A DNA stretch of 64,000 nt from Chlorokybus atmophyticus (GCA_009103225.1 RHPI01002504.1:154220-218219), one strand, 5' to 3'; positions 31,702 to 59,862 are shown, numbered from the stretch's first letter. The notes: generated by a model from the letters alone, not told the origin. Numbers and translations: made by a program.

Positions 31702-31740
31702 CACCGGTAATTATGAGACCCCCGAATTTTTGAAAATTCA

Positions 31741-32330
31741 TGGCAAACGCACTGAATATTCGTTGGATTTACCGTTTCAGCTTTTTATCGAGTGAATATT
31801 CAAGTGTTTTCGCACATTTTGTGCAATCCCTGCCAAAACGAAATCGCGACATTCACCTATAAATCGCGTGAATATCCACACGATAAATCAATGCCACCTT
31901 TTAAAACCCATATACCTCGTATATTCAATTGAAATCGATTGAATGTTCAAGGCATGCAATTGTGAATGGACACATCATGTGCTCTGCTAAATATTCAGCT
32001 ATACATTGCCTGAACATTCATGAAGGGGCATAAGCTTGTCGCTATAACAGACAGCTTAAACTCACCAAGTCCCAACTGCCCATGAATAATCAATTGATTA
32101 GCTTGTCACACATGTATATTCATAACCTTCATCAGTTTCATGCCACAGATGTGAGTGAACATTCAACACCAATCTGAAACTACGCAATACGATTCACACT
32201 AAGTCCTAGCTTTGAGTGAATTTTCAACACCATTCCAAAATCAAGCAATACGTTTTGCACTAACTCCTAGCTGTGAGTGAATATTCAACCCCACACGAAA
32301 TAAACATATACTCTCATTTTGGCCAAGTCC
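31741..32330. repeat. Left subterminal repeats (GTGAATATTCA-like)
   Basis: gtgaatattcaa, gtgaatatccac, gtgaacattcaac, gtgaattttcaac, gtgaatattcaac. Confidence 0.8.
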
Positions 32331-32499
32331 CGAATGTGATTGAAAACCAAGTAGATTGCACTGCTAATTCCAATATACAGTCTAGTATATGTCAAAGCCA
32401 GAGTTGCTCAGCAATTCTACACAGCTGGTTTGAGTTGATGGTGGGGGACAGCTCTGATATGGACTACAGCATTGCTATGCTACACACCACCTGCTACTA

Positions 32500-35400
32500 C
32501 TAGCTCAACTCATGTCTTTGCTGTGCTAGCATACTGTCCATGAGTGTTCGCAATCGTCTTCTCAACCTGTCTGCCACTTGAGGATGAAACCAACTCCTTT
32601 GCATCTGCACACAACCACACAGCAATAACATGTGGTTACTAAGCACGTGTCGGCCTACACGACAGTGCCATTGAAGCACCTTCCACTTGTAAACATTGCA
32701 GTGCACATGCATGAACTGTACCTGTTGAAATATCCGTGCGTTTGGGTCAATTGGACCAGCTTGTACCCCATCTATAAACTTGTCAAGATAAAGCATGACA
32801 AACAACCCGCACGCAACTCCATCCTTCTGCTGAGGGACCTGCACAAACATGTGTCAATGCTTGCAAACCAAATGCATGTGCATGCATCCAATCAGTGCTT
32901 GTGACAGAATGCATGCAAACTCATCACTAGTGCAATGCAACGTGTGCTACCTGTGGTACAAGAAGCTGTACGTTTTCGGGAGAGAAGCGTCGTTGTGAGT
33001 CACTTCCATGCTTTCTGCCCCACATGTAGTCAAGGTAAGCGCGCATAGGTCCATCAACGTTGCGATGCAGGCCAAGGGAGTCGAGATGGACGAGTAAAGG
33101 CGGCGTGTCACTTCCAAGTTGGCCTCCAGGATTGCACACAAGCAGCAGACTCCAGTGAGTCCTGTGAACAATCAAAATAATTCCAGTTTGCAAATACAGC
33201 AGCAATTCAGCAAGATATTCTTGGCGCTTATTCTCACCGCGTGTCTGGGTTGACAATCACTCCCAGCAAGTCCTTGGCAAACGGATCACTCTCCCACCTG
33301 TCTATCCTGTGATTGCTCGTGTGCCAGTCATTTTGTCTATGGCAGCGCACGATCTTGGTGTAGAAATGCGGGTGGAACAGCTTCACCTGAATGCCATCTG
33401 CTCTGCCTAAGATTTCCTCTTCCTTGTATCTGCATGTGCATCCCACGTACATATGAGATACACGAATAACACAGACGCAACAAATCACATACCTGCAAAA
33501 GAAGTGGAGGATGGTGTCATTGAGCTCTTGTCTGCCATCCAGCAACCTCCTGTCCGTTTCAAGCACTGGCACCGCATCACGTGCACTTGCACTAGGGTAA
33601 ATGAACAGTGGCTGCGGTGTTGACGGCTGCGGGTTGCTGACTGGATCGTCCAGCACCATGATATCATCATCGCTGCCCACGAGGTCCACAACTGCCGCAG
33701 CCGTCGTGGGTTGCTGATTACAGCCCTCTTCGTCTTCATCGTCAACTTCCATCGTGACTGCCTCTGCAGCCATAAATGGTTCAATTGGGCAAGAACCACA
33801 ACGCAAATCAACAAGCTCAAGCACACAGCAGCTTACCATTGTTAGCCTCATCCCCACTCTCTTCAACGTGTTGAACCCCACTCTGCACAGGTTGTGAAAC
33901 CCTACCGCAACTGCCCGGCAGAGAACGACGAGCAAGGCTCTCCCTTGGGAGCTGCGCTGGAGCACCACCTTCTTCGTACGCAGCGCATCGCGAGCACGTA
34001 ACCTCAACCATGCTACCCACAGCGTGCCGTCGACAGAGGCTGTTTGGACACGTCGCGCAGACTTGAAAAGCTGCTTCGTTGCAGTTCTTCACATGGCACC
34101 TGTGTTTTGGTTCAGTACAAGTGATGATGGTTCTAGGAGTGAAGTTCCTCACAACAAGATGCCAAGCATTTGCTGCAATGAAGTCCACTTACTCATGCCT
34201 TGGGCACTCCCAATATTCATCCTCCACAGGTGGCATAGAGACACAGTGCGCGTGGTAGCTTTTCCAGCAACCTTCCACATCGCAGCCAGATATGGTGCCC
34301 CCATCCTTGCAGACAAAGCAGTAGTCTTCATGTTCCCGATGTTCCAACGCATCCAGCTCCAGTCTCGGTCTCATCCTGTGAACAAAGGTTCAGTGGCCAG
34401 GTCTACAGTCTCACAGTAGGGATATGAGGCATCACAATCGCAAACAGTACCTCTTGTACTCAAAATGCCAGTCGCGGCGTGTGGTCCATGACACCTCGCT
34501 CGAGGCGCTATTGGTTTCGCTTTGGGCACCCTGCACCAAGTACACAAGATGGTTGTATGTGATGCCAAAACCCAGGATATATGAGGACATCCAGATTCTA
34601 ATGGACAACGTTGTTAACTCTCCTCTTACCGGAGTGTCCCGGTGCATGCCTCGACGCATGAGACTGCGCCTGTCTTTAACAAGCGCTACTGTTACTTTGT
34701 TGTCATGGGGATCAATTCCCTCAAACCACTGGCCCTTGACCTGCCAGCAAGAAGGGATATTCATCAGCCATTTTCATACTACTATTTCAATTTACTATCA
34801 TCACACCAAGCACACGCCAAAACGATTGCAACACAGCCACTTACCAGGTTGCAATCAAGGTAGGTTTGTTCTGCAAAGCGGGGCTTGTCTTTTCTTAGGA
34901 TTGCAAATCCTCCACTGTGCTGGACTTGGTTGCTCATGTACCACCTAGCTCTGAGCAGCTGGTGCTCCCGACCAGCTATCACCACAACATCAAAGGATTG
35001 CACCCTGCCATACCAATGGATCTTCTTGGTTGGGTCATCTGAGTCACGCCCAACGGTAAACACGCCACAGTCCATGGTGCGGAGTTTCTTCTCCATTTCC
35101 TCTGCTCTGAACTGACCGATGTCCTTGTAGCGTGCTCTGAAGTATCGCTTGATGTACTTTGGAAAGATTGGACCGCTCAACAGCTCCATCTCGTGCTTTG
35201 TAAGCTCCCTAGCAGGTCCACGCCAGTGATGCAGCTCAGTCATATGCTCCATATCCTTTGCCACGACATGTCCTTGTGTTTGAGCCCTTTCCCTTGCCAT
35301 CCTGCGTTTGTTCACCTCCCGACTGAACTCTCTGTGTAGCAGCAACCCATAAATAAATCATACTGTCTGGGCGTTGGACATCACGTACAAAACAGCAACT

Positions 35401-38400
35401 CCCAAAGCAACTTACTCTTTTAACAGCCTGTATTCATCGTCATTCTCAGCCAACCACCACTCGAGCTCCTGCCTTGTCTTACTATCTTTATCCCCAACCT
35501 CAATACGGTGTCTCCGTCCGCAGAGCACATAGTTGTCATCATCTCGTTGCTTGCCCGATCGCAAACTGATGTCGGAGAAAAGTCGCTTCAAGGTGTCCAT
35601 GTAAGTGTTCAGCATGAGCTGGATAGAGTATCTGCAGATGCAACTGGCACTTGAACAAGGCAAACAATGTGGAAAGTTTGCACGTAACTCTCAGTGGGCT
35701 CACACAAAACTTGCCTTTTGCAGATGCTTGCTTCCACATGCTGCCTTGCAAATATCATGCGCTTCACCCACTGCATAAAGCGTTCATGTGCCCACTCCCA
35801 GTGGTCACGCGTCGGACCAAGCCACATGCACTGCTCTGGTAGATGGCCAAGGAGGTGCAGCATCATTGTGAGAGAAGTTCGCGGGAAGAACAGCTCCACT
35901 TCAGACTGTGCCTCATGCACCAGCACCTGCACTAAGTAATGAGCTATGCATGCCATAAGAGCTGGGCATGCAGAGTAAAGTGTTATTAAAGCCAACCTTC
36001 AATTCTTCGAGGTGTGACTGCTTTACTTCCAATGCAGTCAGCCGTTGATAGATGTCGCATAGTTTGAAGATGGTTCCCTTCTGATCTTCTCCAATGTCGT
36101 GTGCAGAGCGCAGCACGTACTGAAAAACGACCGACCATAAGTTGTGCTTGTCGTGCGATTTCATCGAGCCTGCATGCTCCATGTTAAAAGCTCCATGCAT
36201 GGAGAATCACTGCTTTAGCGTAAACACAAAACATATAACGGCTATCTCACCTAAATGCTTTGTGAAAAACTGCAGTTTCGAGCCGAAAATGCTTGAAACC
36301 CTCACGCCGGAGAGCAATAGCTCAATCAGTCCTACATCTGTGATTGTCCATGGAGCCTGGGGTTTTACCTTGACTGCGACTTCCTTTCCATCCTTCATCT
36401 TCATCTTTGTCTGCAGCACATAGGTTCAAGTCCTTGGTTAAATCCAACTATGGCACATGTTAACGAGGCCGACTACATACGTACTTCTAGCCAGAGTTCA
36501 GGCATGCGGCCTTGCTGCTGCAGATCTTCTCGTGATTCGATGCTGTCGCGCAAGCCAGCTAGGAGATTTGCAAAGTTGGTTGCCAGGTTGGCAAAAATGT
36601 GCATAGGGCCAACCACATGACCTTTGACAGATTTTTGTAACGGTAGCCAATATGGAAGGTCGTGAAAACAGCTCAGTCCAAGGATGCCGGAGGTCTTTAA
36701 AGGATGCCTCTTGGAGTGTAGTGGACGCTTGCTGTTGCGAGATGTCATAGCATACCTGATCACATGGCATCCATTGCTGACATACCTATGTTCTGCAACC
36801 GAATGCGCGATCAACTGAGATTGCTCACCTGTACACGCTCTCTGCAGTTCGCCTGGGTGGTGGAGGTCTGTGTTCTGGTTGCGGCCAACGCTCATCAACT
36901 CTGTAAGGATGGTCATCCGGTAGGTACCGGCGGTGGCCTTGATAGATCACCTTTTTGAGAAGTTCCACATGTTCTCCACTGCACTCACACTTTGAACAGC
37001 CAAAGATGGCTCCATGCGCCATCTGCAAGGCAGCTTTTGCCAGAGCTGCGCAACCAACATGATGTACTTCAGTAGCCACAACCATGGTTGTAAGGACAGT
37101 CCAATATACAGATACAGTCAGACACTGATAACAGTAAGTGCAAACACTGCTGCTGCTTGCGTACCTGGGCAATCATGGATTACAATCTCCAGAATAGATC
37201 TGCAACGGAAAACTGCGTCGCGGTGGCTGTCATATATGTTTATACCTACAACAAATGCTAGCAGATTACATGCCTCAGTCATGCGCATTTGTCAAGCATG
37301 ACTGCAGTAATGGAAGCTGCTTATCCTATCTGCGTTGAAACCATACCTTCCCAGAGATCTCCCAACTGGACAATAATTGGCTTGAGATAAGCCTGTAGAT
37401 TCTCTGGCTGTTTGGGTCCAGGGATTACAGCAGCTAGAAATGTAGTGTCTGTCTTGTGCATCTTGGCAATGGGCAGGTTCAACACTGAGATTGTGACAAC
37501 CCAAAACTCATAGTTTCCTGCAACTCAACAAACCCTTTGCTGCCATTCGTACAGTTACACTGCAACGAGCATACAGGAAGAAAAATGATCTTTTATACCT
37601 TTGTGCGGATCTTTGAACGGGCTCATCCCGTCGATGAACATCGCTAGGCGCACATTGCGTGGTTCTTTGGCAAACCGGCTGTAGCGTTGTTCAGTGTCCT
37701 TGAACATTGGCGAGTCTGACAGCAGCAAGTACACCAAGGGCTTACGACCAACTGCCCCAGCCCCACAACACATTCAAACATGCATACAATCGCAAGGCTG
37801 GATACTGAGGTCTTACATACCGCCCCAGCACCTCGCCGACACACAAACAAACACAGGCAAGGACACCGAGGTCTTACATGCCGCCTCAGCGCCACGCCGA
37901 CACACAAACAAACACAGGCAAGGACACCGAGGTCTTACATGCCGCCTCAGCGCCACGCCGACACACAAACAAACACAGGCAAGGACACCGAGGTCTTACA
38001 TGCCGCCTCAGCGCCACGCCGACACACAAACAAACACAGGCAAGGACACCGAGGTCTTACATGCCGCCTCAGCGCCACGCCGACACACAAACAAACACAG
38101 GCAAGGACACCGAGGTCTTACATGCCGCCTCAGCGCCACGCCGACACACAAACAAACACAGGCAAGGACACCGAGGTCTTACATGCCGCCTCAGCGCCAC
38201 GCCGACACACAAACAAACACAGGCAAGGACACCGAGGTCTTACATGCCGCCTCAGCGCCACGCCGACACACAAACAAACACAGGCAAGGACACCGAGGTC
38301 TTACATGCCGCCTCAGCGCCACGCCGACACACAAACAAACACAGGCAAGGATACTGAGGTCTTACATACCGCCCCAGCACCTCGCCGACACACAAACAAA

Positions 38401-40067
38401 CACAGGCAAGGACACCGAGGTCTTACATGCCGCCTCAGCGCCACGCCGACACACAAACAAACACAGGCAAGGACACCGAGGTCTTACATGCCGCCTCAGC
38501 GCCACGCACACAAAAGCACAAGGCACGGACACTGAGGGCTTGCATTGGACTGCCCCAGCCGCTCACCAACACAATCATGCACACAGTCGTGCCTCATTTA
38601 CCACTGAACTTGGCAATGTTACCGTGTATAGATCGCATAATCCCATCCTGACTTCGATTTGTGTGCGCCATCATCTCCGCAGCAACACTAGGTTTTAGGT
38701 ACAGAGCCCTCAGCGCAGCAGGCACGTCAAAGTAACGCCCAATCTTCCATGCAACTTGTCTACCTCCTATGTTGCGGTAGCGAGGGGCCTTGCAGACTGC
38801 ATAAGCAAGTCGTATGCTGATGGGACATGCTAATCAAATCCCATTGTAGTGAACATTTGCAACAATTGCTCACCTTTGCAAAGTATCCTGTTGGCATGTC
38901 GGCCACAATACAACATGTGATCACAGCGACAGGCATCATATGTGTGGAAGCCCATGTTGAGGCCTTCAAGGCATTTCAATAGCTCGTGCATGCTGCCTGG
39001 CATCTTATTCTCCTTAGGCAAGAGGATGCCACGCAACAACCTGGCACACAGAAACACATCAGTTCTGAACAGGCTGATGTTTCAGCAGTCAGCAGTGTAA
39101 TTTGCCCACCAACCTGAGCAGTTTATTCATGAAATTGAAGGGTATTCGATGTAGCTGCGCCAGAACCAATAGCAGCATGGAAATGCCTAGAGGGGTTGTA
39201 CGAGAGCCGAAAACAACAGGGTTGCTTGCATTATCCAGCAACGCAGCATTCACCTTGTCAAGTAGCATGGCATCATCAACGCATTTAGCCTCGTCCGGCT
39301 GCGATTCCACATCGGTTTCATAGTCTTGGTCTTCGCCGGCAACATCACCTTGCTCCGCATCACCTTGCTCCGCATCGACTTGCTCAGCAGTGGAGGTGCA
39401 GTGCACTGGCGTCTCAGGCTCTACTTGTCCATTTGTGGATTTGGTTCTGGCACCTTGATGCTCTTGCAATGTAGCATTCTCAATTCCACAAAATGCTGGG
39501 TGAGATCCGCGTTGTTCTCCATAAGCACATTGTCCTTCATGAGCACACGGATTACAACCTGCCAGCTGCAATGAGTCTAGTGGCACATGAACAATGAGAG
39601 GCACAGCATCAGCAATGTCAACATGCCACGCAAGTCAGGTCGTACCTGCTGGTTGCAAGTTGGCTGCAACATTGAAAGGAGATTCAACACTCGGTTGCAA
39701 CGGCGTGCCTGTGTCAACATGTTCAGTAGCGTCGTTCCCAACTAGCAATTGTTCGGTGTCATGGAGAGCTTCACCTGGGGCAAGCCAGATCAATGATCAG
39801 ACAGCCTGTTGTATAGATTCACAGCTGTAGAGAAGTTGCTCTCGTACCTGACGACATGTGTAAGGATGCAGCAGCAACAGCAGCATCAGCTTCTTCAAGT
39901 TCATGGGGTTGTAGTCGATCACGGTATTCAGGAGCAACAGCTTCTGGAGTGCCACACCACATGTTTTTGCCAAAGTTTTCATGATATTCAGCCCTTCTAA
40001 TGTGGTTGTGTGTGAACACTTTGCTCCCTTTGCAGTCGCGGCAAAAACACCTGCGAAAGTAGCTCAT
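32500..40067 (-). CDS. CACTA TnpD-like transposase, predicted to splice in frame to PHD-C5HCH, SIMs and a Ulp1/C48 SUMO protease
   Basis: Exons in order: CFCRDC; LLPKENKMP..YDACRCD; RNVRLAMFIDGMSPF; IPGPKQPENLQAYLKP; IVIHDCPALAK..GCSKC..GHRRYLPDDHPYR; LPYW..GPMH; MKSHDKH; FFPRTSLTMMLHLLGHL..GPTRDHWEWAHERF; WYGRVQ..LLRARWY; YCFVCKDGG..CPRHECHVKNC..CATCPNSLCRRH; ELNDTILHFF, THWSLLLV, HLDSLG, PQQKDGVACGLFV. Start codon is uncertain. Confidence 0.85.
37792..38510. repeat. 61-bp tandem repeat, about 12 copies, in a transposase intron
   Basis: Unit gcaaggacaccgaggtcttacatgccgcctcagcgccacgccgacacacaaacaaacacag; the 61-aa period in the ORF track confirms a 61-nt unit. Confidence 0.97.
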
Positions 40068-40357
40068 GCTACAAACATCAAAAGCAGTCAGCCAACATAC
40101 TGCAAGCAACTTCCAATCAACTTCCATACAGCCAAAGCAAAGACCTGCAGGCACGCTGCCGCCGCTGACACCGCCGCCGTCGCCACCGTCATGCCTGCCT
40201 ACCGTAAATTAAGGGTTTAGGACACATCCAATCCCGATTCAAAACAAGCCAGAAAGTCAATCCGGATATGCTCCACAATTTGCGTACATGCTCCTTTTCT
40301 TCTTCCATCCAGTGCATTAGCTTCTAGGGTTTGTGTGCCAGGTAGCGTGGCGCCAGC

Positions 40358-41985
40358 ATGCGCGGCGTCAAAGTGTGTAGCTTCTGCAAAGCATACTTGG
40401 TTAGGAATGGCAACAACAGACGTCTGCAACAGCATGAAGAGAAGTGCAAGCTGTACAGTGAGCAGTATGGCTTCTATGAAGCCTGCTGGCACCACAAGGC
40501 AAGGGGGGACAATGTGAGGCAATGCAGACTGCTGGCACAATGCATGAGGCCAGATTTCTTTTGGGAGGAGTGCACTTGCCTGCAGTGCTCGCTTTCCAAG
40601 TTTGAGTGGGACGGCGAGCCCATGAATCACCTGCCTTGGGCACGGCCTGGAGCATATCGCGATGGGCAGATGTGCAATGTGGTTCGACGTCAGCTCGTGC
40701 GCAACGGTCGCGGCAAGTCCACTGTAATCGAAGACGATGTCAACAACAGGGTGAGTTGAACTGTCCTTGCAAACAGCAAAACAGCGCTTGCATGCATGAC
40801 CAACTTACTCTTGAATGCCAAAGGGGAACGCGGTTGTCGACGATGTCGCGACACTGGCTGCTTGGCGGAAGGAGATTGTTGATGAGGGGCAGTCTTTGGT
40901 AGCATGCCGCGTTGTGGTGTACTGGCCAGGAATGAGCTCCTGGTATGCAGGCCACATCATCACTTTTGATGCCAACACAGGTATACTGCAGAGTATTTAC
41001 ATGCGCACGCTCATGCAAGCACCGGCTCAGGCAAACATGTGGCTCAGGAAAACATACCATCAAGTACGACGATTTCGTTGAGGACCCACGGCTGCACCAC
41101 ATCTTGATAAAGAACTGGAACATGGCAGCTGTGCGTGAGGGTTACGACGTAATGGTTCGTGTTGGTGGTCAAAGCTGTCTGAAACTGCAAGACTTGCCTG
41201 GTCGAGAGCTCGATCGATGGCCCAAGCCCCCACCCCTTCTGATCACACGCACACCAATAGACTCAAACGGAAGACGTTGCAGGCCGCGCGCACTGGATCT
41301 CTTTTGCGGCGCTGGTGGTGTAGCCATGGGTCTGTACAGGGCAGGGTTTGATGTTGAGGGCATCGACAACAAGCCACAACCGTCATACCCATTCAAGTTC
41401 TGCCAGATGGATGCAATGGACGCTGACCCGACAGCATACGCTGCGGTGTGGGCAAGTCCTCCATGTCAAGCTCTAAGTGGGGCCATTCCCACTACACAGC
41501 GCTCCGCGTACGGCAATCGATGGGAGCACGTCGACCTGATTGACCCCATAAGAGCCAAGTTGCAGTTGAGCGGCAAGCCATGGGTGATAGAGAATGTCGC
41601 AGGCGCATCAGAACACATGACAACTCACCTGAAGCTGTGTGGCACCATGTTCAAGTTGGATGTGTATCGTCATCGCATCTTCGAGACAAACCCTCCACTG
41701 CACTCAGACTTGAAATGCAACCACACTGGTTGTGCACTTGGAGAGCTGGCCACCCACCCGGAGCAGCGCCGGCAGTTGCTACCTGGGGAGAGGCAAATTT
41801 ACCCGGTGTACGGCCAAGCATCCTGCCGTGGCACGATTGCAGGGTGGCAGTCTGCCATGCAGGTGGAGCGGATGGATGCGGAATCGGAAGTCAAGAATGC
41901 CATTCCACCAACTTACTCTGAACATGTAGGCAGGCTGTTGCTGGAAGCAATAGGCTTCACTGTTGATTACCCTCCTTTATACTGA
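40358..41985 (+). CDS. Zn-finger/Tudor/C5 cytosine DNA methyltransferase (phage/bacterial-type catalytic domain), about 495 aa, 3 exons
   Basis: Exons 40358-40750, 40824-40980, 41048-41985 are phase-compatible. CSFC..HEEKC; Tudor LVACRVVVYWPGMSSWYAGHIITFDANT|GKHTIKYDD; MTase motifs I (LDLFCGAGG), IV (ASPPCQ), VI (IENV), VIII (YRHRIFE), X (NAIPPTYSEHVG). Confidence 0.9.
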
Positions 41986-43502
41986 AAGGTAGAGGTAGCT
42001 CTTGATTGCTGGCCACTTTGTTAGCCTGAACTCAAACCCAACAACAGAATGAGCGACCCATAAAGTCAGCAAGAGGTCTTAATCACGAGGATGCCTCTGT
42101 TTGCCAGCACGGGAAAGACTGACCTCCTGGGCAAGGTCTTTTCCAGAGCACCTTCATGCCCTGTTGCGCCGTCCGCCCACCCGAGACTAGACCTCCTGCG
42201 GGTTCACTGCGAACGCAGGGTATGGTCAAACCAAAGCTGACTCGCGAAAGTCATGAACCAGAGGCTCTGAGCATGTGCACAAAGTCTACAGTACGTGACT
42301 TGCGCGAGACGGCTCTGCAGGACCACATCCTGCGTTCGCAGTAAACCCGCAGGAGGTTTTGTGTCGGGTGGGTGGGCGGAGAAGGAGAACTTCTAGGTTG
42401 CTGTGCGCATGCCTTTGGTTGCGTGCAATCTTTGGACACATGCCCGGTTTCAGCGGTTGCCGGGGCCAGTACGAGGGCGTGCCAGTACGAGGGCGGCATG
42501 TCAACAGCAGCAAGAGGTGTTCTCTCGGGTGGGTGGGGGGAGAAGGACTGCCAGCCTGAATTGCCATATCACAAACAGCAACCCAAACCCAGCGGCAGGT
42601 ACAACCGCCGTCCATCCAAAAGCCCTGGAGCAGATCGCGACCAACAAGTTCCATGCAGAGGCTGGAGGTGGTTGAAAAGGTGAAATGCAATCACAGCTAG
42701 TATATGCACGAGAGCGATGCATACCTCATGACTTATCGCGGACTTCTGTTACCACCTCCACTCTACAAGTGCTGTCACACTTACCTGTGCGCCGTGACTG
42801 CATACAAACAGCAGCCAGCAAGGCTCCCAAGGCGGTGCGTTCGCAGTGAACCCGCGTGCAGTCGGGATGATCCTAAGCATACAAGGACAGGCAGATGTGG
42901 GTGATTGCATTTTGCTGCAATCCTTCAACACACACAGATAGGCAGCTAAAGCTAACACACTCTATCCTGTACAAAGACCACGAGATTGTCTTTCCTGTAT
43001 CCTGTCATGTCAAGCTCCTGTCATGTCACCTGGAAGAACACCTCCACTTCCTGCTGGTTAGCAGCGAAAGCAGGTGGCACAGGCAAGAAGGGGGCAAGAA
43101 AGTGAGCAAGAAGGGGGCTTAATCACAGGGTGATGCCCCTACGCTCTGCATACAAAGACAGAATGAGCAAGCAGAGGGCTTATTCACGAGGATGCCTCTG
43201 CATTCAGCATGAGCTCAGACCCGAATCGGGAATGAGAAACAGAGGGCTAAATCTAGAAGATGCCTATGTGTTCAGCTTGAATTAATATATATACTTACAC
43301 ATGAGGTTGGCCCTACGCTGCAAGAACGATAGATTCTGCACAGGCATGGTGAGGTAGCAGAGGCTCCTGCAAACACAACAGCAGCAGATGTTAACGAGAG
43401 CAATACTTGCATCTTTTGCTATTGTACAAGCAGTGTCCATGCGTGTTCCAACCTGCAAAGCTGGTAGTCGTGAAGTGAACAACCTCGAGGTTGCTGTTAC
43501 AG

Positions 43503-46949: not shown

Positions 46950-47221
46950 AAAACAGCTTGAAAACTGAGCAAGAGGTGGTCTTACGCACGAGGCCGCCCC
47001 TCTGGTTAGCATCAAGTGGTGGCTAACAAGAGTGCATGCTCAAATAAAACAGCTTGAAAACTGAGCAAGAGGTGGTCTTACGCACGAGGCCGCCCCTTTG
47101 GTTAGCATCAAGTGGTGGCTAACAAGAGTGCATGCTCAAATAAAACAGCTTGAAAACTGAGCAAGAGGTGGTCTTACGCACGAGGCCGCCCCTCTGGTTA
47201 GCATCAAGTGGTGGCTAACAA
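46950..47221. repeat. 96-bp tandem repeat, about 2.8 copies
   Basis: aaaacagcttgaaaactgagcaagaggtggtcttacgcacgaggccgcccc recurs at 46950, 47046 and 47142. Confidence 0.93.
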
Positions 47222-47869: not shown

Positions 47870-48180
47870 TTCACTGGGGCGGCATGTAAGCCCTCAGTGT
47901 CCTGCCTTGTGGTTTCCGTTATTTGCATGTGTTGGTGATTCACTGGGGCGGCATGTAAGCCCTCAGTGACCTGCCTTGTGGTTTTGTTTCTGTGGTTCTG
48001 TTGGTGATTCACTGGGGCGGTCTGTAAGACCTCAGTGACCTGCCTTGTTTTTGTGTTTCTGTGCATGCGTGCTGGTGAGTCGCTGGGGCGGTCTGTAAGA
48101 CCTCAGTATCCTGCCTTGTGGTTTTGTTTTTCTGTGAATGTGTTGGTGAGGAGCTGGGGCGGTCTGTAAGACCTCAGACC
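47870..48180. repeat. About five diverged ~70-bp repeats
   Basis: Core ctggggcgg(ca/tc)tgtaag(c/a)cctcagt recurs about every 68-71 bp. Confidence 0.85.
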
Positions 48181-48399
48181 GGCCCTGTGGTGTGGATTGG
48201 GTGAATGTTTTTGTGACTCTGTTTCGCCATATGTCATAACCCTAACCCTAACCGCCCGGACATGTTGTTGTAGGTTGTGGCCGGGAGGCAGCGAGGTTGC
48301 CGTGGTTGGCGGCGAAGTCTTTGAGGTCGGTGGCGACGGCGCCAGCGATCTTGAGTTCCTAGCAAGAAGCTCAGGCAGATACGTCGCATGCAGATTGTA

Positions 48400-51300
48400 G
48401 TCAAGGTCGTCGTCGGCGGCGCCGGCGCAGGCAAGGTCATCGTCGTCGTCGGCGGCGGCGGCGATGCTGGAGCGCTAGCGGCTACACAGCAGATACGTGC
48501 ATGCCGTGCTTCCTTGCGCATTCCATGCATGTGTGTGTGTGTGTGTGCGTGCTGTGCGTGATGTGTTTGCTGCAAGCCGCTGGGGCAGCCTTGTGCATAA
48601 CCCCTCAGTGGCCTTACCTGTGCTGCGGCACAAACGTTGTTTGCTGCCAGCCGCTGGGGCAGCCTTGTGCGTAACCCCTCATTGGCCTTACCTGTGCTGC
48701 GGCACAAAAGCTGTTTGCTGCAAGCCGCTGGGGCAGCCTTGGGCATAACCCCTCAGTGGCCTTGCGGCAAAAGGGTGTTCTTTCTGTGTGTGCTTGCGCT
48801 AGCATTGTGTCTTTCAAGAGTCATTTCCCTGCTCCATTTCTGACTCTACTGTTGGTGAACTACGGTGTGTGATCTACAGGTAAACAGCTACCATTCAGCG
48901 ATGGCCGGTCGCTTTAGGTCCATGGACTTAGGTCATGGACTTAGGGTTTTGGAGTTACAGCAGCCATTTCGCATGCAGATTTTAGTCAAGGTCGGCGGCG
49001 GCGGCGCCGGCGCAGGCAAGGTCATCGTCGTCGTCGTCGTCGTTGGCGATGCTGGAGCGCTAGCGGCTACACAGCAGATACGTGCATGCCGTGCTTCCTT
49101 GCGCATGCCATGCATGTGTGTGTGTGTGTGTGTGCGTGCTGTGCGTGCTGTGTTTGCTGCAAGCCGCTGGGGCAGCCTTGTGCATAACCCCTCAGTGGCC
49201 TTACCTGTGCTGCGGCACAAAAGTTGTTTGCTGCAAGCCGCTGGGGCAGCCTTGGGCATAACCCCTCAGTGGCCTTGCCTGTGCTGCGGCAAAAAGGTGT
49301 TTGCTGCAAGCCGCTGGGGCAGCCTTGTGCATAACCCCTCAGTGGCCTTGCCTGTGCTGCGGCACAAAAGTTGTTTGCTGCAAGCCGCTGGGGCAGCCTT
49401 GGGCATAACCCCTCAGTGGCCTTGCCTGTGCTGCGGCAAAAAGGTGTTTGCTGCAAGCCGCTGGGGCAGCCTTGTGCATAACCCCTCAGTGGCCTTGCCT
49501 GTGCTGCGGCACAAAAGCTGTTTGCTGCAAGCCGCTGGGGCAGCCTTGGGCATAACCCCTCAGTGGCCTTGCCTGTGCTGCGGCAAAAAGGTGTTTGCTG
49601 CAAGCCGCTGGGGCAGCCTTGTGCATAACCCCTCAGTGGCCTTGCCTGTGCTGCGGCACAAAAGCTGTTTGCTGCAAGCCGCTGGGGCAGCCTTGGGCAT
49701 AACCCCTCAGTGGCCTTGCCTGTGCTGCGGCAAAAAGGTGTTTGCTGCAAGCCGCTGGGGCAGCCTTGTGCATAACCCCTCAGTGGCCTTGCCTGTGCTG
49801 CGGCACAAAAGCTGTTTGCTGCAAGCCGCTGGGGCAGCCTTGGGCATAACCCCTCAGTGGCCTTGCCTGTGCTGCGGCAAAAAGGTGTTTGCTGCAAGCC
49901 GCTGGGGCAGCCTTGTGCATAACCCCTCAGTGGCCTTGCCTGTGCTGCGGCACAAAAGTTGTTTGCTGCAAGCCGCTGGGGCAGCCTTGGGCATAACCCC
50001 TCAGTGGCCTTGCCTGTGCTGCGGCAAAAAGGTGTTTGCTGCAAGCCGCTGGGGCAGCCTTGTGCATAACCCCTCAGTGGCCTTGCCTGTGCTGCGGCAC
50101 AAAAGTTGTTTGCTGCAAGCCGCTGGGGCAGCCTTGGGCATAACCCCTCAGTGGCCTTGCCTGTGCTGCGGCAAAAAGGTGTTTGCTGCAAGCCGCTGGG
50201 GCAGCCTTGTGCATAACCCCTCAGTGGCCTTGCCTGTGCTGCGGCACAAAAGTTGTTTGCTGCAAGCCGCTGGGGCAGCCTTGGGCATAACCCCTCAGTG
50301 GCCTTGCCTGTGCTGCGGCAAAAAGGTGTTTGCTGCAAGCCGCTGGGGCAGCCTTGTGCATAACCCCTCAGTGGCCTTGCCTGTGCTGCGGCACAAAAGT
50401 TGTTTGCTGCAAGCCGCTGGGGCAGCCTTGGGCATAACCCCTCAGTGGCCTTGCCTGTGCTGCGGCAAAAAGGTGTTTGCTGCAAGCCGCTGGGGCAGCC
50501 TTGTGCATAACCCCTCAGTGGCCTTGCCTGTGCTGCGGCACAAAAGTTGTTTGCTGCAAGCCGCTGGGGCAGCCTTGGGCATAACCCCTCAGTGGCCTTG
50601 CCTGTGCTGCGGCAAAAAGGTGTTTGCTGCAAGCCGCTGGGGCAGCCTTGTGCATAACCCCTCAGTGGCCTTGCCTGTGCTGCGGCACAAAAGTTGTTTG
50701 CTGCAAGCCGCTGGGGCAGCCTTGGGCATAACCCCTCAGTGGCCTTGCCTGTGCTGCGGCAAAAAGGTGTTTGCTGCAAGCCGCTGGGGCAGCCTTGTGC
50801 ATAACCCCTCAGTGGCCTTGCCTGTGCTGCGGCACAAAAGTTGTTTGCTGCAAGCCGCTGGGGCAGCCTTGGGCATAACCCCTCAGTGGCCTTGCCTGTG
50901 CTGCGGCAAAAAGGTGTTTGCTGCAAGCCGCTGGGGCAGCCTTGTGCATAACCCCTCAGTGGCCTTGCCTGTGCTGCGGCACAAAAGTTGTTTGCTGCAA
51001 GCCGCTGGGGCAGCCTTGGGCATAACCCCTCAGTGGCCTTGCCTGTGCTGCGGCAAAAAGGTGTTTGCTGCAAGCCGCTGGGGCAGCCTTGTGCATAACC
51101 CCTCAGTGGCCTTGCCTGTGCTGCGGCACAAAAGTTGTTTGCTGCAAGCCGCTGGGGCAGCCTTGGGCATAACCCCTCAGTGGCCTTGCCTGTGCTGCGG
51201 CAAAAAGGTGTTTGCTGCAAGCCGCTGGGGCAGCCTTGTGCATAACCCCTCAGTGGCCTTGCCTGTGCTGCGGCACAAAAGTTGTTTGCTGCAAGCCGCT

Positions 51301-52881
51301 GGGGCAGCCTTGGGCATAACCCCTCAGTGGCCTTGCCTGTGCTGCGGCAAAAAGGTGTTTGCTGCAAGCCGCTGGGGCAGCCTTGTGCATAACCCCTCAG
51401 TGGCCTTGCCTGTGCTGCGGCACAAAAGTTGTTTGCTGCAAGCCGCTGGGGCAGCCTTGGGCATAACCCCTCAGTGGCCTTGCCTGTGCTGCGGCAAAAA
51501 GGTGTTTGCTGCAAGCCGCTGGGGCAGCCTTGGGCATAACCCCTCAGTGGCCTTGCGGCAAAAAGGTGTTCTTTCTGTGTGTGCTTGCGCTAGCATTGTG
51601 TCTTTCAAGAGTCATTTCCCTGCTCCATTTCTGACTCTACTGTTGGTGAACTACGGTGTGTGATCTACAGGTAAACAGCTACCATTCAGCGATGGCCGGT
51701 CGCTTTAGGTCCATGGACTTAGGTCATGGACTTAGGGTTTTGGAGTTACAGCAGCCATTTCGCATGCAGATTTTAGTCAAGGTTGGCGGCGGCGGCGCCG
51801 GCGCAGGCAAGGTCATCGTCGTCGTCGTCGTCGTTGGCGATGCTGGAGCGCTAGCGGCTACACAGCAGATACGTGCATGCCGTGCTTCCTTGCGCATGCC
51901 ATGCATGTGTGTGTGTGTGTGTGCGTGCTGTGCGTGCTGTGTTTGCTGCAAGCCGCTGGGGCAGCCTTGTGCATAACCCCTCAGTGGCCTTACCTGTGCT
52001 GCGGCACAAAAGTTGTTTGCTGCAAGCCGCTGGGGCAGCCTTGGGCATAACCCCTCAGTGGCCTTGCCTGTGCTGCGGCAAAAAGGTGTTTGCTGCAAGC
52101 CGCTGGGGCAGCCTTGTGCATAACCCCTCAGTGGCCTTGCCTGTGCTGCAGCAAAAAGGTGTTTGCTGCAAGCCGCTGGGGCAGCCTTGTGCATAACCCC
52201 TCAGTGGCCTTACCTGTGCTGCGGCACAAAAGGTGTTTGCTGCAAGCCGCTGGGGCAGCCTTGGGCATAACCCCTCAGTGGCCTTGCGGCAAAAGGGTGT
52301 TCTTTCTGTGTGTGCTTGCGCTAGCATTGTGTCTTTCAAGAGTCATTTCCCTGCTCCATTTCTGACTCTACTGTTGGTGAACTACGGTGTGTGATCTACA
52401 GGTAAACAGCTACCATTCAGCGATGGCCGGTCGCTTTAGGTCCATGGACTTAGGTCATGGACTTAGGGTTTTGGAGTTACAGCAGCCATTTCGCATGCAG
52501 ATTTTAGTCAAGGTCGGCGGCGGCGGCGCCGGCGCAGGCAAGGTCATCGTCGTCGGCGGCGGCGGCGGCGATGCTGGAGCGCTAGCGGCTACACAGCAGA
52601 TACGTGCATGCCGTGCTTCCTTGCGCATGTCATGCATGTGTGTGTGTGTGTGTGCGTGCTGTGCGTGCTGTGTTTGCTGCAAGCCGCTGGGGCAGCCTTG
52701 GGCATAATTCCTCAGTGGCCTTGCGGCAAAAGGGTGTTCTTTCTGTGTGTGCTTGCGCTAGCATTGTGTCTTTCCAAAGTTATTTCCCTGCTCTATTTCT
52801 GACTCTACTGTTGGTTAACTACGGTGTGTGATCCACAGGTAAACAGCTACCATTTCGCGATGGCCGGTCGCTTTAGGTCCA
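48400..52881. repeat. Higher-order tandem repeat: four units, each with a variable array of 73/74-bp monomers (147-bp dimer)
   Basis: Shared tail ...gtgtgatc(t/c)acaggtaaacagctacca.. near 48865, 51656, 52387 and 52825; main array 49150-51555 has about 33 monomers; 49-aa period in the ORF track equals 147 nt. Confidence 0.95.
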
Positions 52882-55320: not shown

Positions 55321-56360
55321 TGCCATTTGCCTGCTAGCTTGCTGTTAGGCTTACCTTTGTCGTGTTCAGCTGGCAAGAAGCTGAAGCAGCTTCTACTCTA
55401 CAAGGTACTGGGTGTTTGGCTTGCAGTGTGCCTGTTTGACAAGTTCACAAGCACATGTTTGTGCATGCACATGCCATTTGCCTGCTAGCTTGCTGTTAGG
55501 CTTACCTTTGTCGTGTTCAGCTGGCAAGAAGCTGAAGCAGCTTCTACTCTACAAGGTACTGGGTGTTTGGCTTGCAGTGTGCCTGTTTGACAAGTTCACA
55601 AGCACATGTTTGTGCATGCACATGCCATTTGCCTGCTAGCTTGCTGTTAGGCTTACCTTTGTCGTGTTCAGCTGGCAAGAAGCTGAAGCAGCTTCTACTC
55701 TACAAGGTACTGGGTGTTTGGCTTGCAGTGTGCCTGTTTGACAAGTTCACAAGCACATGTTTGTGCATGCACATGCCATTTGCCTGCTAGCTTGCTGTTA
55801 GGCTTACCTTTGTCGTGTTCAGCTGGCAAGAAGCTGAAGCAGCTTCTACTCTACAAGGTACTGGGTGTTTGGCTTGCAGTGTGCCTGTTTGACAAGTTCA
55901 CAAGCACATGTTTGTGCATGCACATGCCATTTGCCTGCTAGCTTGCTGTTAGGCTTACCTTTGTCGTGTTCAGCTGGCAAGAAGCTGAAGCAGCTTCTAC
56001 TCTACAAGGTACTGGGTGTTTGGCTTGCAGTGTGCCTGTTTGACAAGTTCACAAGCACATGTTTGTGCATGCACATGCCATTTGCCTGCTAGCTTGCTGT
56101 TAGGCTTACCTTTGTCGTGTTCAGCTGGCAAGAAGCTGAAGCAGCTTCTACTCTACAAGGTACTGGGTGTTTGGCTTGCAGTGTGCCTGTTTGACAAGTT
56201 CACAAGCACATGTTTGTGCATGCACATGCCATTTGCCTGCTAGCTTGCTGTTAGGCTTACCTTTGTCGTGTTCAGCTGGCAAGAAGCTGAAGCAGCTTCT
56301 ACTCTACAAGGTACTGGGTGTTTGGCTTGCAGTGTGCCTGTTTGACAAGTTCACAAGCAC
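55321..56360. repeat. 151-bp tandem repeat, about 7 copies, each containing an AG/GT-flanked 35-nt exon-like cassette
   Basis: ORF starts 55412, 55563, 55714 are 151 apart; each unit has ttcAG|ctggcaagaagctgaagcagcttctactctacaag|GTactg. Confidence 0.95.
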
Positions 56361-56553
56361 GCCTTTGTGCAAGCAGCTTAGAGACACTTCTTTTGCAAGG
56401 TACATGGTTTGCTTGCTGTGACAAGTCAACAAGCAAGTCCACATGGCTTACAACCTGCAGTCACTTGAGTCAACCAAGACTTGAGGTTGATTAGGGTTGC
56501 GGTTGCAACTGACTTGTAAAGCAAGCTTGATCTATCTACAGGAGGGCATCATC

Positions 56554-59051
56554 ATGTCAGGCACCACGTCGGGTGGGCGGTCCAGCAACTGCAGCGAAGG
56601 ATGGGAGAATTTGGACGAAGAGATATGGGGGAAGAATGCTGGTGGTCCTTCTGATGAGCAGCTGCAGCATGAGTGGGAAACCAGTGAGGCGACTGTTCAC
56701 CTGCGTGATCTTGAGACCACAGCAATGGTCTCCTTAAAAGTGAGCTTATGCATCAAGCATCCGCAATCAATGTCAGACCTTGCTGCCGAAGTCTGTTTTG
56801 TCCCATGTTGTACTAGTGCACCAATGTAAATCATGCAGGCACTGAAGGTCCTACATTGGCGTGGGAAGCATCATGCCCGTGATCGTCGCAAGGTCACCAA
56901 GCTGGCCGACAAAGGCCGGATTTGCTACGAGTACTGTCGCATGATGCCGGGGAAGACTCAAACGAAGCAGGACCCATTCAAGTTCGCTCTTGCAACCAAA
57001 TGCTGGCATCTGCTGAATCCAGAGCTCTCCTATCAAATGGTTGGCAAATTCCCACAGTTACATGAGCTGTCATGCAATATGGCAGCATTGTCTGAGCTAG
57101 GAGGAGTTTGCTTTGCATGTGTTGGCCTTCACAACTTCTTCATTGGTGGGTAGGCGCGTTTGAAGATTCAACAGTATCTGGGCAACAAAAAGGGATACAG
57201 CAACCCCAAGCACAAAGAGAAGCAGAAAGAAAAGAGTCGGAATCGTTACAAGGAGATGATGGAGAAGGCTTTCGCGGGGGGCTTTGTGCCAAGGCGCAGG
57301 GGAGGGCCTAGCGACAAGAACAACAAGGTGTGTGTCATGTAGTGACTAAGGTGTTCGTGCGATGTGCATGTCTTGAGTGCCTTTGCCATGTGCTTGATAG
57401 AAAGCCAACAAGAAGAAGCCCAAGAAGTCAAAAGAAGTGCAATCTGCCAGCGACGACGAGGATGCCACCTCAGAGGGTGACCTACAGTTTGCACAAAGTT
57501 GGCTTTGTCAATGTCGTGTTGAGAACGATGCTTTGTGTTTGATGGTGCCTTATGTATGCAGGTTGTGTGGTGTGTATGATGACCCCTTGTAATTGCACGG
57601 CGCCCACGCGTTCACATCCCGCCAGCGACGCCAGCGACGACAGGAATGGCACCTCGCAGCGTGAGCCGCGTCTTGCGCGCGCAGGCAGCTGCTGGAGTAC
57701 TGTGTGTATATGCAGGCTTTTGTGATCGGTGCCTTGTGTATGCGATAGGTAACAAGGAAGGCACTGCACCACAACCCTCAAGTTCTCCTGCTACTGGTTC
57801 ACAGGTCAGATGCCGCTCCTGCTTGTACTTTGCTAAACATGTGTTCATGATCGTTCATGACTGTTGTGTTCAGGCACGTGCCAAGCAGGGTGCTGATGTG
57901 CGTGACAGCAGCTCAGGGAAGCGCAAAGTGTCTGGTGAGGTACGCAGCATTGGACTTGATAGAGCGGCAATGCACTGAGTTGTGGCTCACCATCTGACTT
58001 CATGCTGTTGGCAGGAGGATGAGGTGTCAAGCCCCCCCAAAAAGAAAACAAACAAAACTGTTCGCTCGATACCGGCTCCCTACAAGTCTCAGGAGGCAGG
58101 CCACTCGACTGGCAAGCAGGAGACGGTGTTGGAGAAGAAGAGCGGCAAGCAAAAGGAGGTATGAAAGCACCATGTACTTGATCTTATGGGCTTCTTGCGT
58201 TCTTCTGGCTGCACACAAACTGTCACCTGCGGCAGGCACGCATTCGTTGCGTGACGGTTGTAAGCTTGTTAACACGTCGTGTCACCTTGTCGCGCAGGAT
58301 GAGCCAACGTATTCAGAAATGCCTGAGACAGATAGAAGCGAGAACAGCGGTGAAGATGGCGCCAAGGACAGCGCCCCGGACAGCGAGGGGGACAGCCCCA
58401 ACAACAGCGACAACGACTCGCAGAAGGCAGGTCGCTTCGCAAGCGCTGTATGAGAGATCACATCTGTGTATGTGTGTACCTCTTGATGTGTTTGTCACTT
58501 GCATGCGCAGGAAGAGCTGAGCGACAAGGACGACACCGCACCGACGATGAAGGTTGGCAGTGAAGTCCAACTGTTCATTAACGGGCGCAAAGAACCAGTA
58601 GGGGAGGCGCACGTAAGCGACATCAATCCTGTCAACAAGTTTCATGGCAAGAAGATTGGAGACGGCAACATGGTGGTCCAGTTCAGCCGCAGTCTTCCCA
58701 TCACTAGGACCAGACGTCCCGGACCAGGGGAAGAAGAGGTTGTGCCTCTGCCAATCAGCTTCAAGCGTGATGGGGTTGGAGTGCAAGTGACCCACTTGAA
58801 AGGTGAACGCGTTTGTGTGCATGCGATTGCATGAACAGTTTCAACATTGTGCAAGTCAGCTGAGTTCATGTGTGGTTGATGTATGCGCAGAGTGCGAGCC
58901 GGGTTTGTTGCTACTTTGGCCTGTTGGGTTGCTGAAGAGTATCAAGGTGAGGGAGCCAGCAAAGAAAGGCACAACCACACAGCGCGGGAGGGGCCGTGGG
59001 AAGGGCAGCCCGGGTGGGCGCGGTGGGCGTGGTCGAGGCAGCAAGAAGTAG
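56554..59051 (+). CDS. CACTA TnpA/TNP1-like second protein, multi-exon
   Basis: Spliced K/E/S-rich ORF; C-terminal KVGSEVQLFINGRKEPVGEAHVSDINPVNKFHGKKIGDGNMVVQF..LLLWPVGLL resembles the TNP1 C-terminal domain; RG-rich tail; lies next to the right TIR. Confidence 0.6.
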
Positions 59052-59199
59052 GTAGCAGAGATATATTGTAGACATCAGTGAATTTGTTGTTCAAGTCAGC
59101 TGCCATTCAGCTGACATTGCTGTCCAAATTCACCGGCTGGACTGATTGCTATGTGCTATGTCACAGCTATGCTATGTCACAGCTGTTGACGATAGCAAG

Positions 59200-59823
59200 A
59201 TGCAGTGATTATTCAACCAAACTGTGAGTGAATAACCACTTATATGTAGGACTATGTGTGTGAGCAGAAGTGCTGTATTATTCAATTATCATTTTTGTGG
59301 AAAATCAACCAAAGGCAGCAGTGTTCAACCATACTATGGGTGAATAACCACTCATATATAGGACTGTGTGAGAGCAGATATGCTGTATTATTCAATCACA
59401 AATCGTATGAATAATCACTCGCCAGTGTGGTACATGTGCTGTTGAAACAGCTTTGGTATGTGTGAACATTAAGCCAATATGCGTGTGAATAATTACCTAT
59501 AAGGAGGACATAGTGTGAGAGCAGGCGCTGTAAATATTCATGCACACAAAGTATGAATAATCACTTGGTGCCATGGTACAAGTCTAGGACCATGTATACC
59601 TAAGAAGACTGAATATGCAGTTCTGTCGCGAGTGAATAACTACTCACATGTAGGAGGTTGTGTGCGAGATGGACAACTGCAATTATTCATGACCAAAATG
59701 TGAATATCCATTGCTTGTATTCAGGGCATTTGGCCTGAATAATCAGCAATCGTAACAGCGACCTCTGCAGCCACGCAAGTGGCGAGTTCACACATAAAAC
59801 ATGAGTATTCAGGGCAAATGCGC
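59200..59823. repeat. Right subterminal repeats (GTGAATA / TATTCA motifs)
   Basis: gtgaataaccact x2, gaataatcact x2, gtgaataactact, gtgaatatccat and several ttattca. Confidence 0.8.
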
Positions 59824-59862
59824 TGAATTTTCAGACATTCGGGGGGTCCAGAATTACCGGTG

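Follow-up and report, generated by a model that had tools for sequence, protein, structure and literature searches.

Positions 31702 to 59862 of a 64,000-nucleotide stretch from the alga Chlorokybus atmophyticus (GCA_009103225.1 RHPI01002504.1:154220-218219; the whole stretch is called the window here) are a single complete 28-kb cut-and-paste DNA transposon of the EnSpm/CACTA type (CMC clade). We are highly confident that a bounded CACTA element carries the cargo described below: a gene joining a putative Tudor domain to a C5 DNA methyltransferase (MTase), a PHD-C5HCH reader arm with a Ulp1 SUMO protease, and a gene that probably encodes an OTU protease. The anatomy of the element, its intact catalytic motifs and the near-identity of its many copies are read directly. 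On this footing, our favored reading is that we are probably looking at a complete copy of a multi-copy, recently mobile element whose cargo modifies chromatin in the element's favor.

Ends of the element and other copies

The features that bound the element are the following.

31699-31701, no strand: left target site duplication (TSD), TAT; the same TAT stands after the right end
31702-31761, plus strand: left terminal inverted repeat (TIR), CACCGGTAATT, perfect over 11 bases and then imperfect to ~60 nt, found by TIR comparison; contigs with foreign flanks begin to match at 31701-31704
31731-32287, no strand: left subterminal repeat zone, 25 TGAATATTC-like matches, from a motif scan of both strands
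59206-59833, no strand: right subterminal repeat zone, 18 matches, from the same scan of both strands
59803-59862, minus strand: right TIR, found by TIR comparison
59863-59865, no strand: right TSD, TAT, matching the left TSD

The TIRs that begin at 31702 and end at 59862 are identical at 11 of 11 positions, the first 11 bases of the left end being the exact reverse complement of the last 11 of the right end, so that the terminal pair reads CACCGGTAATT...AATTACCGGTG. Beyond these bases the likeness is imperfect, with 51 of the first 80 positions identical. A 26-nt degenerate pattern built on the TIR matched twice in the 64 kb, both times at an element terminus, and 0 times in shuffled sequence (0 expected). 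The element is flanked on either side by TAT. EnSpm/CACTA termini are classically CACTA/G. The termini here are CAC...GTG and read CACCGG, with CG rather than TA or TG at positions 4-5, and only CAC is canonical.

Next to the termini lies a near-palindromic TGAATATTC-like motif, which was counted on both strands with at most one mismatch. It has 25 matches in 31731-32279 and 18 in 59206-59825, compared with 8 over the remaining ~62 kb, which places 43 of the 51 matches within ~660 bp of the element ends; subterminal repeats of the GAATATTC type are restricted to the two ends. This terminal architecture matches the En/Spm type, and the palindromic repeats are likely candidates for binding sites of an element-encoded protein. 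Comparison of the element with its flanks, and of one flank with the other, found no sequence similarity. The empty site reconstructed by removing the element held no decisive open reading frame (ORF), and Rfam and tRNA scans of the window returned nothing.

Does the element exist elsewhere in the genome? We aligned contigs from two public sequencing runs of two separate studies (X1 and X2) to positions 29300-35200 only. An X1 contig of 2,892 bp matches 31701-34503 with 11 differences, and the 89 bases that precede the match are unrelated. A second X1 contig begins to match at 31704 and an X2 contig at 31702, each with its own unrelated upstream sequence. Because these three contigs join at 31701-31704 from different flanks, three other insertions lose homology at the predicted left terminus. 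Contig k-mer depth over the element was ~37 in X1 and ~28 in X2, whereas the few contigs that fell in unique flank had a depth of 3-7. We conclude that the family is multi-copy and ~99.6% identical, a likeness so close that it speaks for recent mobility. An earlier first-pass annotation of this DNA had proposed a single CMC/CACTA element delimited by TIRs and a TSD; this is borne out by the data, the insertions with other flanks included.

As to the cargo of other copies, at least the arm running from the TIR through Ulp1 to C5HCH and PHD is contiguous in one of them (the 2,892-bp X1 contig), and X1 and X2 contain 73-74% of the 31-mers sampled from 39700-46700, the region of the MTase and OTU genes.

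One short interval behaved differently in these runs. At 34422-34618 the depth was 65 in X1 and 48 in X2, compared with 37 and 28, and separate 61-bp contigs map to 34459-34519. Because the depth nearly doubles there, this short segment between the transposase and PHD exons occurs elsewhere in the genome too.

Transposase and chromatin cargo

Domains that are split across reading frames in the element rejoin through canonical GT-AG introns of 60-120 nt, in keeping with the spliceosomal introns proposed at first pass. The crude splice-aware gene finder that we used broke the known MTase gene into too many or too few pieces as the intron penalty was varied; we relied on it only for coding potential and for whether open chains exist, and placed key junctions by hand. 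The main genes and domains are as follows.

34845-40194, minus strand: TnpD/Tnp2-type transposase gene of ~15 exons, from Pfam matches, with the exon chain predicted from ORFs and GT-AG sites
40358-41985, plus strand: gene encoding a Cys/His region, a putative Tudor domain and a C5 DNA methyltransferase, 495 aa, no defects seen, from homology and splice reconstruction
34195-34326, minus strand: NSD-type PHD finger (PF22908, E = 1.2e-6, 29.1 bits, cutoff 23.9; PF13771, E = 6.3e-7, 30 bits, cutoff 29.1)
34000-34104, minus strand: C5HCH (NSD Cys-His rich) domain (PF17982, E = 1.7e-5, 25.3 bits, just under the cutoff of 26.3)
33645-33694, minus strand: two motifs resembling SUMO-interacting motifs (SIMs), VVDLVGSDDD and IMVLDD, in an acidic linker, read by eye with no statistics
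32503-33530, minus strand: Ulp1/C48 SUMO-protease domain in four exons, from PF02902 matches in two ORFs and splice reconstruction
43503-46696, minus strand: gene whose N-terminal module is duplicated, with a probable OTU protease, PQ/EAKQ repeats and a gag-like segment, from motifs, coding score and Pfam

The transposase is recognized by Transposase_21 (PF02992), which matches over 36828-37773 in three ORFs: 37558-37773 (profile positions 8-44, E = 5.7e-7), 37324-37524 (positions 48-109, E = 2.2e-9) and 36828-37172 (positions 135-207, E = 7.2e-7). The gap in the profile is filled by ORF 37121-37291 (GINIYDSHRD...HDCP), which GT-AG introns of 101 and 119 nt join in frame to its neighbors. DUF4218 (PF13960) follows at 35699-35920 within ORF 35612-35998 (E = 1.1e-9). 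The translations show IDGMSPF, a second Asp (YDSHRD) and CSKC, and such a CxxC after the second Asp is a mark of the Tnp2/TnpD-type DDE transposases. Upstream exons with typical TnpD N-terminal sequence reach ~40194, including a Cys-rich N-terminal exon near 39879-40194, and no stop codons were seen inside the conserved segments. The TnpD of the first-pass annotation therefore stands. A homologue search with one transposase exon returned a blank that the word index and length window of the search make uninformative. At the segment that we take to be DVMHIEKN in plant TnpD, the transposase reads GPMHIFAN. Loss of a catalytic Glu at this place was considered as a sign of inactivation and was not counted as one, because animal and fungal relatives carry D-x-[LM]-H-x3-L-G, with no fixed Glu, at the motif presumed equivalent (PMC1636069).

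Divergent from the transposase gene, and starting ~160 bp or less from its predicted first exon, is the MTase gene; this spacing on opposite strands suggests that the two genes share a divergent promoter. Its exons (40358-40750, 40824-40980 and 41048-41985) are separated by introns of 73 nt (GTGAGT...AG) and 67 nt (GTATAC...AG), and the Tudor domain spans ~40884-41125, the MTase domain 41260-41982. Database methylases match the C-terminal 250 aa with E = 7e-69 (phmmer), and a search of 1.84 billion representatives gave 4,067 relatives with E ≤ 0.001. Identity to mycobacteriophage cytosine methylases is 40-41% over 95-98% of the domain length; Pfam PF00145 alone gave E = 2.8e-4 and 20.9 bits, compared with a cutoff of 22. 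Motifs I (DLFCGAGG), IV (SPPCQ), VI (VIENV), VIII (RHRIFE) and X (NAIPP) occur in order and align with those of 16 homologues. Judged by its sequence, the protein is a compact phage-type C5 cytosine methyltransferase with its catalytic motifs intact, as had been called at first pass, and we consider it likely to be catalytically active.

The two best-scoring matches to the MTase are tandem double methylases on phage contigs, one beside a terminase gene and the other beside Thy1. In our tree the MTase is sister to a small clade, and in several members of this clade the target-recognition region contains an inserted methyl-CpG-binding domain; the grouping has moderate support (92/89). Like members of that clade, the MTase has an insertion following motif IV and a DYPP motif at the C terminus. 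The sister-clade relatives lie on short, gene-dense, intron-less metagenomic contigs, one of them (P0001) beside a gene for a 2-oxoglutarate (2OG)-Fe(II) oxygenase. Relatives of this kind, writers with a built-in reader of 5-methylcytosine (5mC), might themselves be maintenance-type enzymes.

For reference, the tandem double methylases, C5 enzymes that belong to this compact family too, are at L002:779-2140 and L003:1402-2745 of the phage contigs (P0121 and P0122), and the relatives with a methyl-CpG-binding domain are at L001:606-1568, L004:2028-3050 and L005:447-1616 (proteins P0001, P0123, P0125 and P0126).

Could the region then be a fragment of an endogenized virus, either a giant virus or a polinton-like one? 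The nearest MTase relatives are on gene-dense metagenomic contigs that are possibly viral, and viruses are known to have Ulp1-like and OTU proteases. Set against this are the spliceosomal introns found throughout, the Tnp2 transposase, the TIRs, the 3-bp TSD and the subterminal repeats, and no capsid, polymerase or packaging gene was found in any ORF scanned. With no viral hallmark gene in those ORFs, we rejected this explanation as highly improbable.

The domain that precedes the MTase is less clear-cut. The first half of the Tudor domain, in exon 2, matches a 66-aa Tudor chain, 7de9_A, with E = 0.01 and retains the W/Y aromatic positions in the aligned half; we take 7de9 to be the Tudor domain through which Arabidopsis RDM15/PDS5C binds H3K4me1. 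Exon 3 encodes the second half, and the Pfam match (Tudor_KDM3B, E = 0.062) comes from a search of the halves unjoined. The Tudor reader named at first pass is thus a putative one, of the plant PDS5C/RDM15/MSH6 type with a barrel of ~55 aa. The N-terminal 130 aa of the 495-aa protein, which are rich in Cys and His, had no match in Pfam scans.

On the other side of the transposase gene is the reader-protease arm. The PHD_NSD and zf-HC5HC2H matches fall in ORF 34192-34389 and the C5HCH match in ORF 33820-34188, so that PHD and C5HCH occupy adjacent exons with C5HCH directly after PHD. Peptidase_C48 (PF02902) is split over two ORFs with E = 0.0035 and 0.005 (17.7 and 17.1 bits); these scores are under the cutoff of 20.7 because the domain is divided between ORFs. 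Predicted canonical introns at 33430-33492 (63 nt), 33162-33237 (76 nt) and 32839-32950 (112 nt) yield a spliced Ulp1 that reads ...LNDTILHFFCRYKEEE...VIVNPDTRTHWSLLLV...LLVHLDSLG...VPQQKDGVACGLFV, in which the catalytic His, Asp, Gln and Cys follow one another in family order (THW, LDSL and QQKDGVACG). Both the PHD-C5HCH reader and the Ulp1 SUMO protease of the first-pass annotation are upheld by these matches and residues. A GTAAGT donor at 34844 closes the last transposase exon, and at least two in-frame routes lead from it to the PHD exon, which also starts near an ATG. The PHD-C5HCH-SIM-Ulp1 exons could thus be fused to the transposase or form a gene of their own, and we lean toward the transposase being spliced onto them as a fusion.

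The remaining cargo gene is the one to which we assign a probable OTU protease. In its upstream ORF, DGNCFY aligns with the catalytic-Cys motif of nairovirus OTU structure chains (E = 0.03). A GT-AG intron of 111 nt links this ORF to a long ORF of 636 codons, which has a strong coding score and contains PQ and EAKQ repeats, and an AHY motif follows ~130 aa downstream of DGNCFY. The putative catalytic codons are at 45648-45650 (Cys) and 45018-45020 (His). Neighbors of the OTU piece in the protein atlas were OTU-bearing clusters, at only 0.83. From these motifs, we regard identity as an OTU deubiquitinase as reasonably probable. The 636-codon ORF also holds a Retrotrans_gag match (PF03732) at 43947-44108 on the minus strand, with E = 4.2e-5 and exactly at the Pfam cutoff.

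The joining of this gag-like segment to the C-terminal half of the OTU and to the PQ/EAKQ repeats in one ORF would be an odd protease-gag chimera for a DNA transposon to carry.

The gag-like piece also bears on whether the cargo does anything for the element at all. CACTA elements capture host fragments (PMC6379663), and the cargo could consist of passive passengers, host or viral copies captured in the manner of Pack-CACTA elements that are useless to the element and decaying. The piece in the OTU gene resembles such a captured fragment, and no RNA run covering the region was found. Decay is hard to square with a complete MTase gene in which every catalytic motif is kept and both introns are clean, or with a Ulp1 that retains His, Asp, Gln and Cys across three introns, and the readers are fused to enzymes in a functionally sensible way. 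We consider passive cargo unlikely.

Possible roles of the cargo and related systems

If the cargo works for the element, how might it do so? In the mechanism that we favor, the transposase would cut and paste the whole 28-kb unit, and an element-encoded protein would bind the subterminal palindromes. The Tudor domain would bring the MTase to chromatin with a methyl-lysine mark, where it would write 5mC, and the PHD-C5HCH-SIM module would bring Ulp1 to SUMOylated chromatin proteins, from which the protease would strip SUMO. The OTU would remove ubiquitin. The SUMO and ubiquitin removed in this way could be needed for host silencing or for turnover of the transposase, and the cargo would alter chromatin at and around the element to the element's advantage. 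That the net role of the cargo is to counter or steer host silencing is a more tentative proposal, which we would put somewhat short of an even chance. At first pass, too, it had been suggested that the element may control its own chromatin state or counter silencing by the host.

Several points weigh against this reading. A methyltransferase is a paradoxical cargo for anti-silencing. Direct evidence from a further copy bearing these TIRs is confined to the Ulp1-PHD arm and does not extend to the MTase or OTU gene, and copies this alike offer no measure of purifying selection. The third catalytic (acidic) residue of the transposase was not located in the translations. In our search, no RNA run covering the region turned up, and expression and all splice junctions are predictions. 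As for the OTU, its domain (PF02338) had no Pfam match even at E = 10, the homologue search was blank (again uninformative given the word index and length window), and an AlphaFold2 single-sequence model of the C-terminal piece was unusable, with a predicted local distance difference test score (pLDDT) of 44.8. The first-pass annotation had asserted this deubiquitinase too firmly; what remains of it is the pair of motifs and the atlas neighbors, with neither a Pfam match nor homologues behind them. Finally, the ratio of observed to expected CpG is 0.58 in the element, compared with 0.52-0.61 in the flanks, with no element-specific footprint.

Across positions 1-64000 as a whole, this ratio runs from 0.52 to 0.79, with TpG and CpA at 1.3-1.7, and the element does not stand out. 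The window-wide CpG depletion is consistent with genome-wide CG methylation in C. atmophyticus.

The role of the MTase may lie in anti-silencing, self-restraint, stealth or nuclease protection; all are candidates, and the CpG depletion gives no hint among them. An alternative to anti-silencing is that the enzyme methylates the element or the host for self-restraint or stealth, or that it shields DNA from nucleases such as those of algal viruses, and that the host tolerates or benefits from it. The enzyme falls within a clade of phage-type orphan methylases, and retrotransposons bearing DNA methyltransferases (DNMTs) are regarded as shaping the methylome of the host, not as erasing marks (PMC5890265), both of which suit this alternative. 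The Tudor fusion favors chromatin targeting over plain sequence-specific protection, and nothing in the analysis bears on the substrate or target of the MTase. We judge a role of this kind to be a minority prospect.

How does the element compare with known systems? Plant En/Spm elements (CACTA, some copies with Ulp1-like genes) share with it Transposase_21 and DUF4218, CAC...GTG termini, a TSD of 3 bp and repeats clustered just inside the ends; they too are large, contain tandem arrays and can include a Ulp1 domain. Unlike them, the element here has CACCGG rather than CACTA/G termini, is without a recognizable TnpA, and adds the C5 MTase-Tudor gene, the NSD-type PHD-C5HCH reader and the probable OTU; it also has divergent gene pairs, whereas En/Spm makes one alternatively spliced transcript.

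Giant elements of the EnSpm/Plavaka lineage are described from red algae; in them, an accessory protein joining a PF01555 methylase to SET and a 2OG oxygenase lie beside tandem arrays (10.1101/2025.02.11.637652). These Plavaka elements with the PAG1-3 cassette (10.1101/2025.02.11.637652) are likewise algal DNA transposons (theirs of 17-19 kb) of the same broad clade, with several accessory genes, a DNA methylase fused to a chromatin domain and tandem arrays adjoining the accessory genes; a further likeness that we draw is that their accessory genes are common to several transposon families. The difference is in the parts: theirs are a PF01555 (N6/N4) methylase with SET and a ParB-like 2OG oxygenase, whereas here there are a PF00145-type C5 enzyme with Tudor, Ulp1 and OTU, and the transposase here matches the classical Tnp2 Pfam models. 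No match to the PAG-cassette domains PF01555, SET or 2OG oxygenase was found in any element ORF scanned. Membership of the Plavaka lineage with this cassette was considered and rejected, given the lack of PAG domains in the ORFs scanned and the classical Tnp2 transposase.

DNA-modification enzymes are also carried by other cut-and-paste elements. TET/JBP cargo occurs in 11 DNA-transposon lineages, EnSpm and Plavaka among them, with transfers between lineages (PMC12730594), and in Chlamydomonas TET genes are found on a large DNA transposon and on Helitrons (10.64898/2026.10.09.758095). These elements of fungi and Chlamydomonas (PMC12730594; 10.64898/2026.10.09.758095) are thus like ours in kind, and their cargo moves between transposon lineages; theirs is an eraser or modifier of 5mC, whereas here it would be a 5mC writer. 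C5 DNMTs are cargo of retrotransposons in dinoflagellates and Klebsormidium (PMC5890265), where again a mobile element encodes a C5 MTase with conserved motifs, in one case in a streptophyte alga. Those are long interspersed nuclear elements, DIRS or long terminal repeat (LTR) elements with eukaryotic Dnmt3-type or other DNMTs within the element ORFs; here it is a DNA transposon with a separate, intron-containing gene for a compact phage-type methylase with a Tudor reader (comparison with PMC5890265). Helentrons with OTU and enlarged En/Spm elements in Chondrus have also been described (PMC6431247). SET cargo and VANC are cited in the red-algal Plavaka paper (10.1101/2025.02.11.637652). VANC of the VANDAL (MuDR) elements, as cited there and in PMC12730594, is a DNA-transposon factor that alters the epigenetic state of its own copies; in those citations it is a sequence-specific hypomethylation factor without an enzyme domain, and we saw no homology to it here.

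Our full-text searches turned up no account of a DNA transposon with a phage-type C5 methylase-Tudor gene, nor of one with its set with PHD-C5HCH-Ulp1 and a probable OTU. The novelty suggested at first pass may thus apply to the exact gene set and not to the principle, since epigenetic cargo on DNA transposons and DNMTs on retrotransposons have already been published. What the element appears to add is a new combination of epigenetic cargo on a DNA transposon, in which a predicted 5mC writer fused to a putative histone reader stands beside a SUMO protease that would be reader guided.

Transposons with epigenetic enzymes form a small, growing class (TET/JBP, SET, N6/N4 methylase, and DNMT in retrotransposons). 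For this class, a complete, sharply bounded copy from a near-identical family is a practical start for asking whether a transposon writes DNA methylation on chosen chromatin, and it suits equally the questions of whether SUMO/ubiquitin removal is a general anti-silencing tactic and how cargo cassettes pass between transposon superfamilies. The Tudor-MTase gene itself documents a phage-type methylase that acquired introns and eukaryotic reader domains. A bolder idea, which we regard as doubtful, is that the Tudor fused to a phage-derived C5 MTase is a mobile, histone-mark-guided de novo 5mC writer common to DNA transposons of several superfamilies. If this were true, transposons would be vectors, and perhaps a main source, of a DNA-methylation activity in this streptophyte algal genome, and would govern the chromatin of their own copies by means of the writer and the SUMO/ubiquitin proteases together.

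Right-hand gene, tandem arrays and minor features

The rest of the element is made up of one further gene and several repeat arrays.

56443-59051, plus strand: right-hand multi-exon gene of ~549 aa, Lys/Glu-rich with an RGG tail, reading toward and adjoining the right end, from coding potential
37800-38507, plus strand: 61-bp tandem array of 11.6 copies, 97%, core GAGGTCTTAC, between transposase exons
46948-52287, no strand: non-coding block of tandem arrays, comprising 96 bp × 2.9 at 46948-47221, 69 bp × 4.8 at 47859-48191, and a 73/147-bp array at 48564-52287
55321-56375, plus strand: 151-bp tandem array of 7 copies, 99%, immediately before the right-hand gene

Over ~56443-59051, every ORF with a positive codon score is on the plus strand, and the crude gene model scored 79 for the right-hand gene compared with 9 for the control region at 46.7-56.4 kb, which is largely tandem arrays and in which we found no convincing coding sequence. 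The product had no Pfam match, including to Transposase_24, and two of its ORFs had no usable atlas match; an AlphaFold2 single-sequence model of its beta-rich ORF was too poor to use (pLDDT 34.7). To call it TnpA is a guess whose sole basis is its position beside the right end. The first-pass annotation had named TnpA too firmly: what is there is a coding-looking gene with no similarity to TnpA or to anything else.

The 61-bp array is presumably intronic, since it lies between transposase exons. The 61-, 96- and 69-bp arrays share the core GAGGTCTTAC, with 26 matches at no more than one mismatch compared with 2 expected. By analogy with the arrays beside red-algal Plavaka accessory genes, these could be protein-binding arrays. 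The 61-bp and 69-bp arrays are mutually inverted, ~9.4 kb apart, and enclose the 5' transposase exons, the MTase gene and the OTU gene.

This arrangement raises the question of whether the Tudor-MTase gene, with or without the OTU, is a mobile cassette or exchanged module of its own that is nested in this CACTA copy, which would make the toolkit a composite. The inverted arrays at 37800-38507 and 47859-48191 do flank the MTase-OTU region, and both fungi and red algae provide cases of accessory genes that pass from one transposon lineage to another (PMC12730594, 10.1101/2025.02.11.637652). The left array, however, lies between transposase exons and the bracketed segment includes the 5' transposase exons, which speaks against a simple insertion. 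Nor was a TIR or TSD seen around the MTase or OTU genes, the family TIR being present only at the two outer ends, and the shared divergent promoter suggested by the spacing of the MTase and transposase starts also argues for genes that belong together. A nested cassette is accordingly improbable in our view, and we retain the single element with its own cargo.

Two smaller features complete the description of the window. Between the MTase gene and the OTU gene, at 42150-42398, is a pair of inverted repeats of 78 nt, 78% complementary and 93 nt apart, which could be a hairpin, a small miniature inverted-repeat transposable element or a terminator-like structure. To the left of the element, a direct repeat of ~540 bp with 85% identity occurs at 20882-21421 and 27313-27836, 6.4 kb apart, and is probably part of an LTR retrotransposon.

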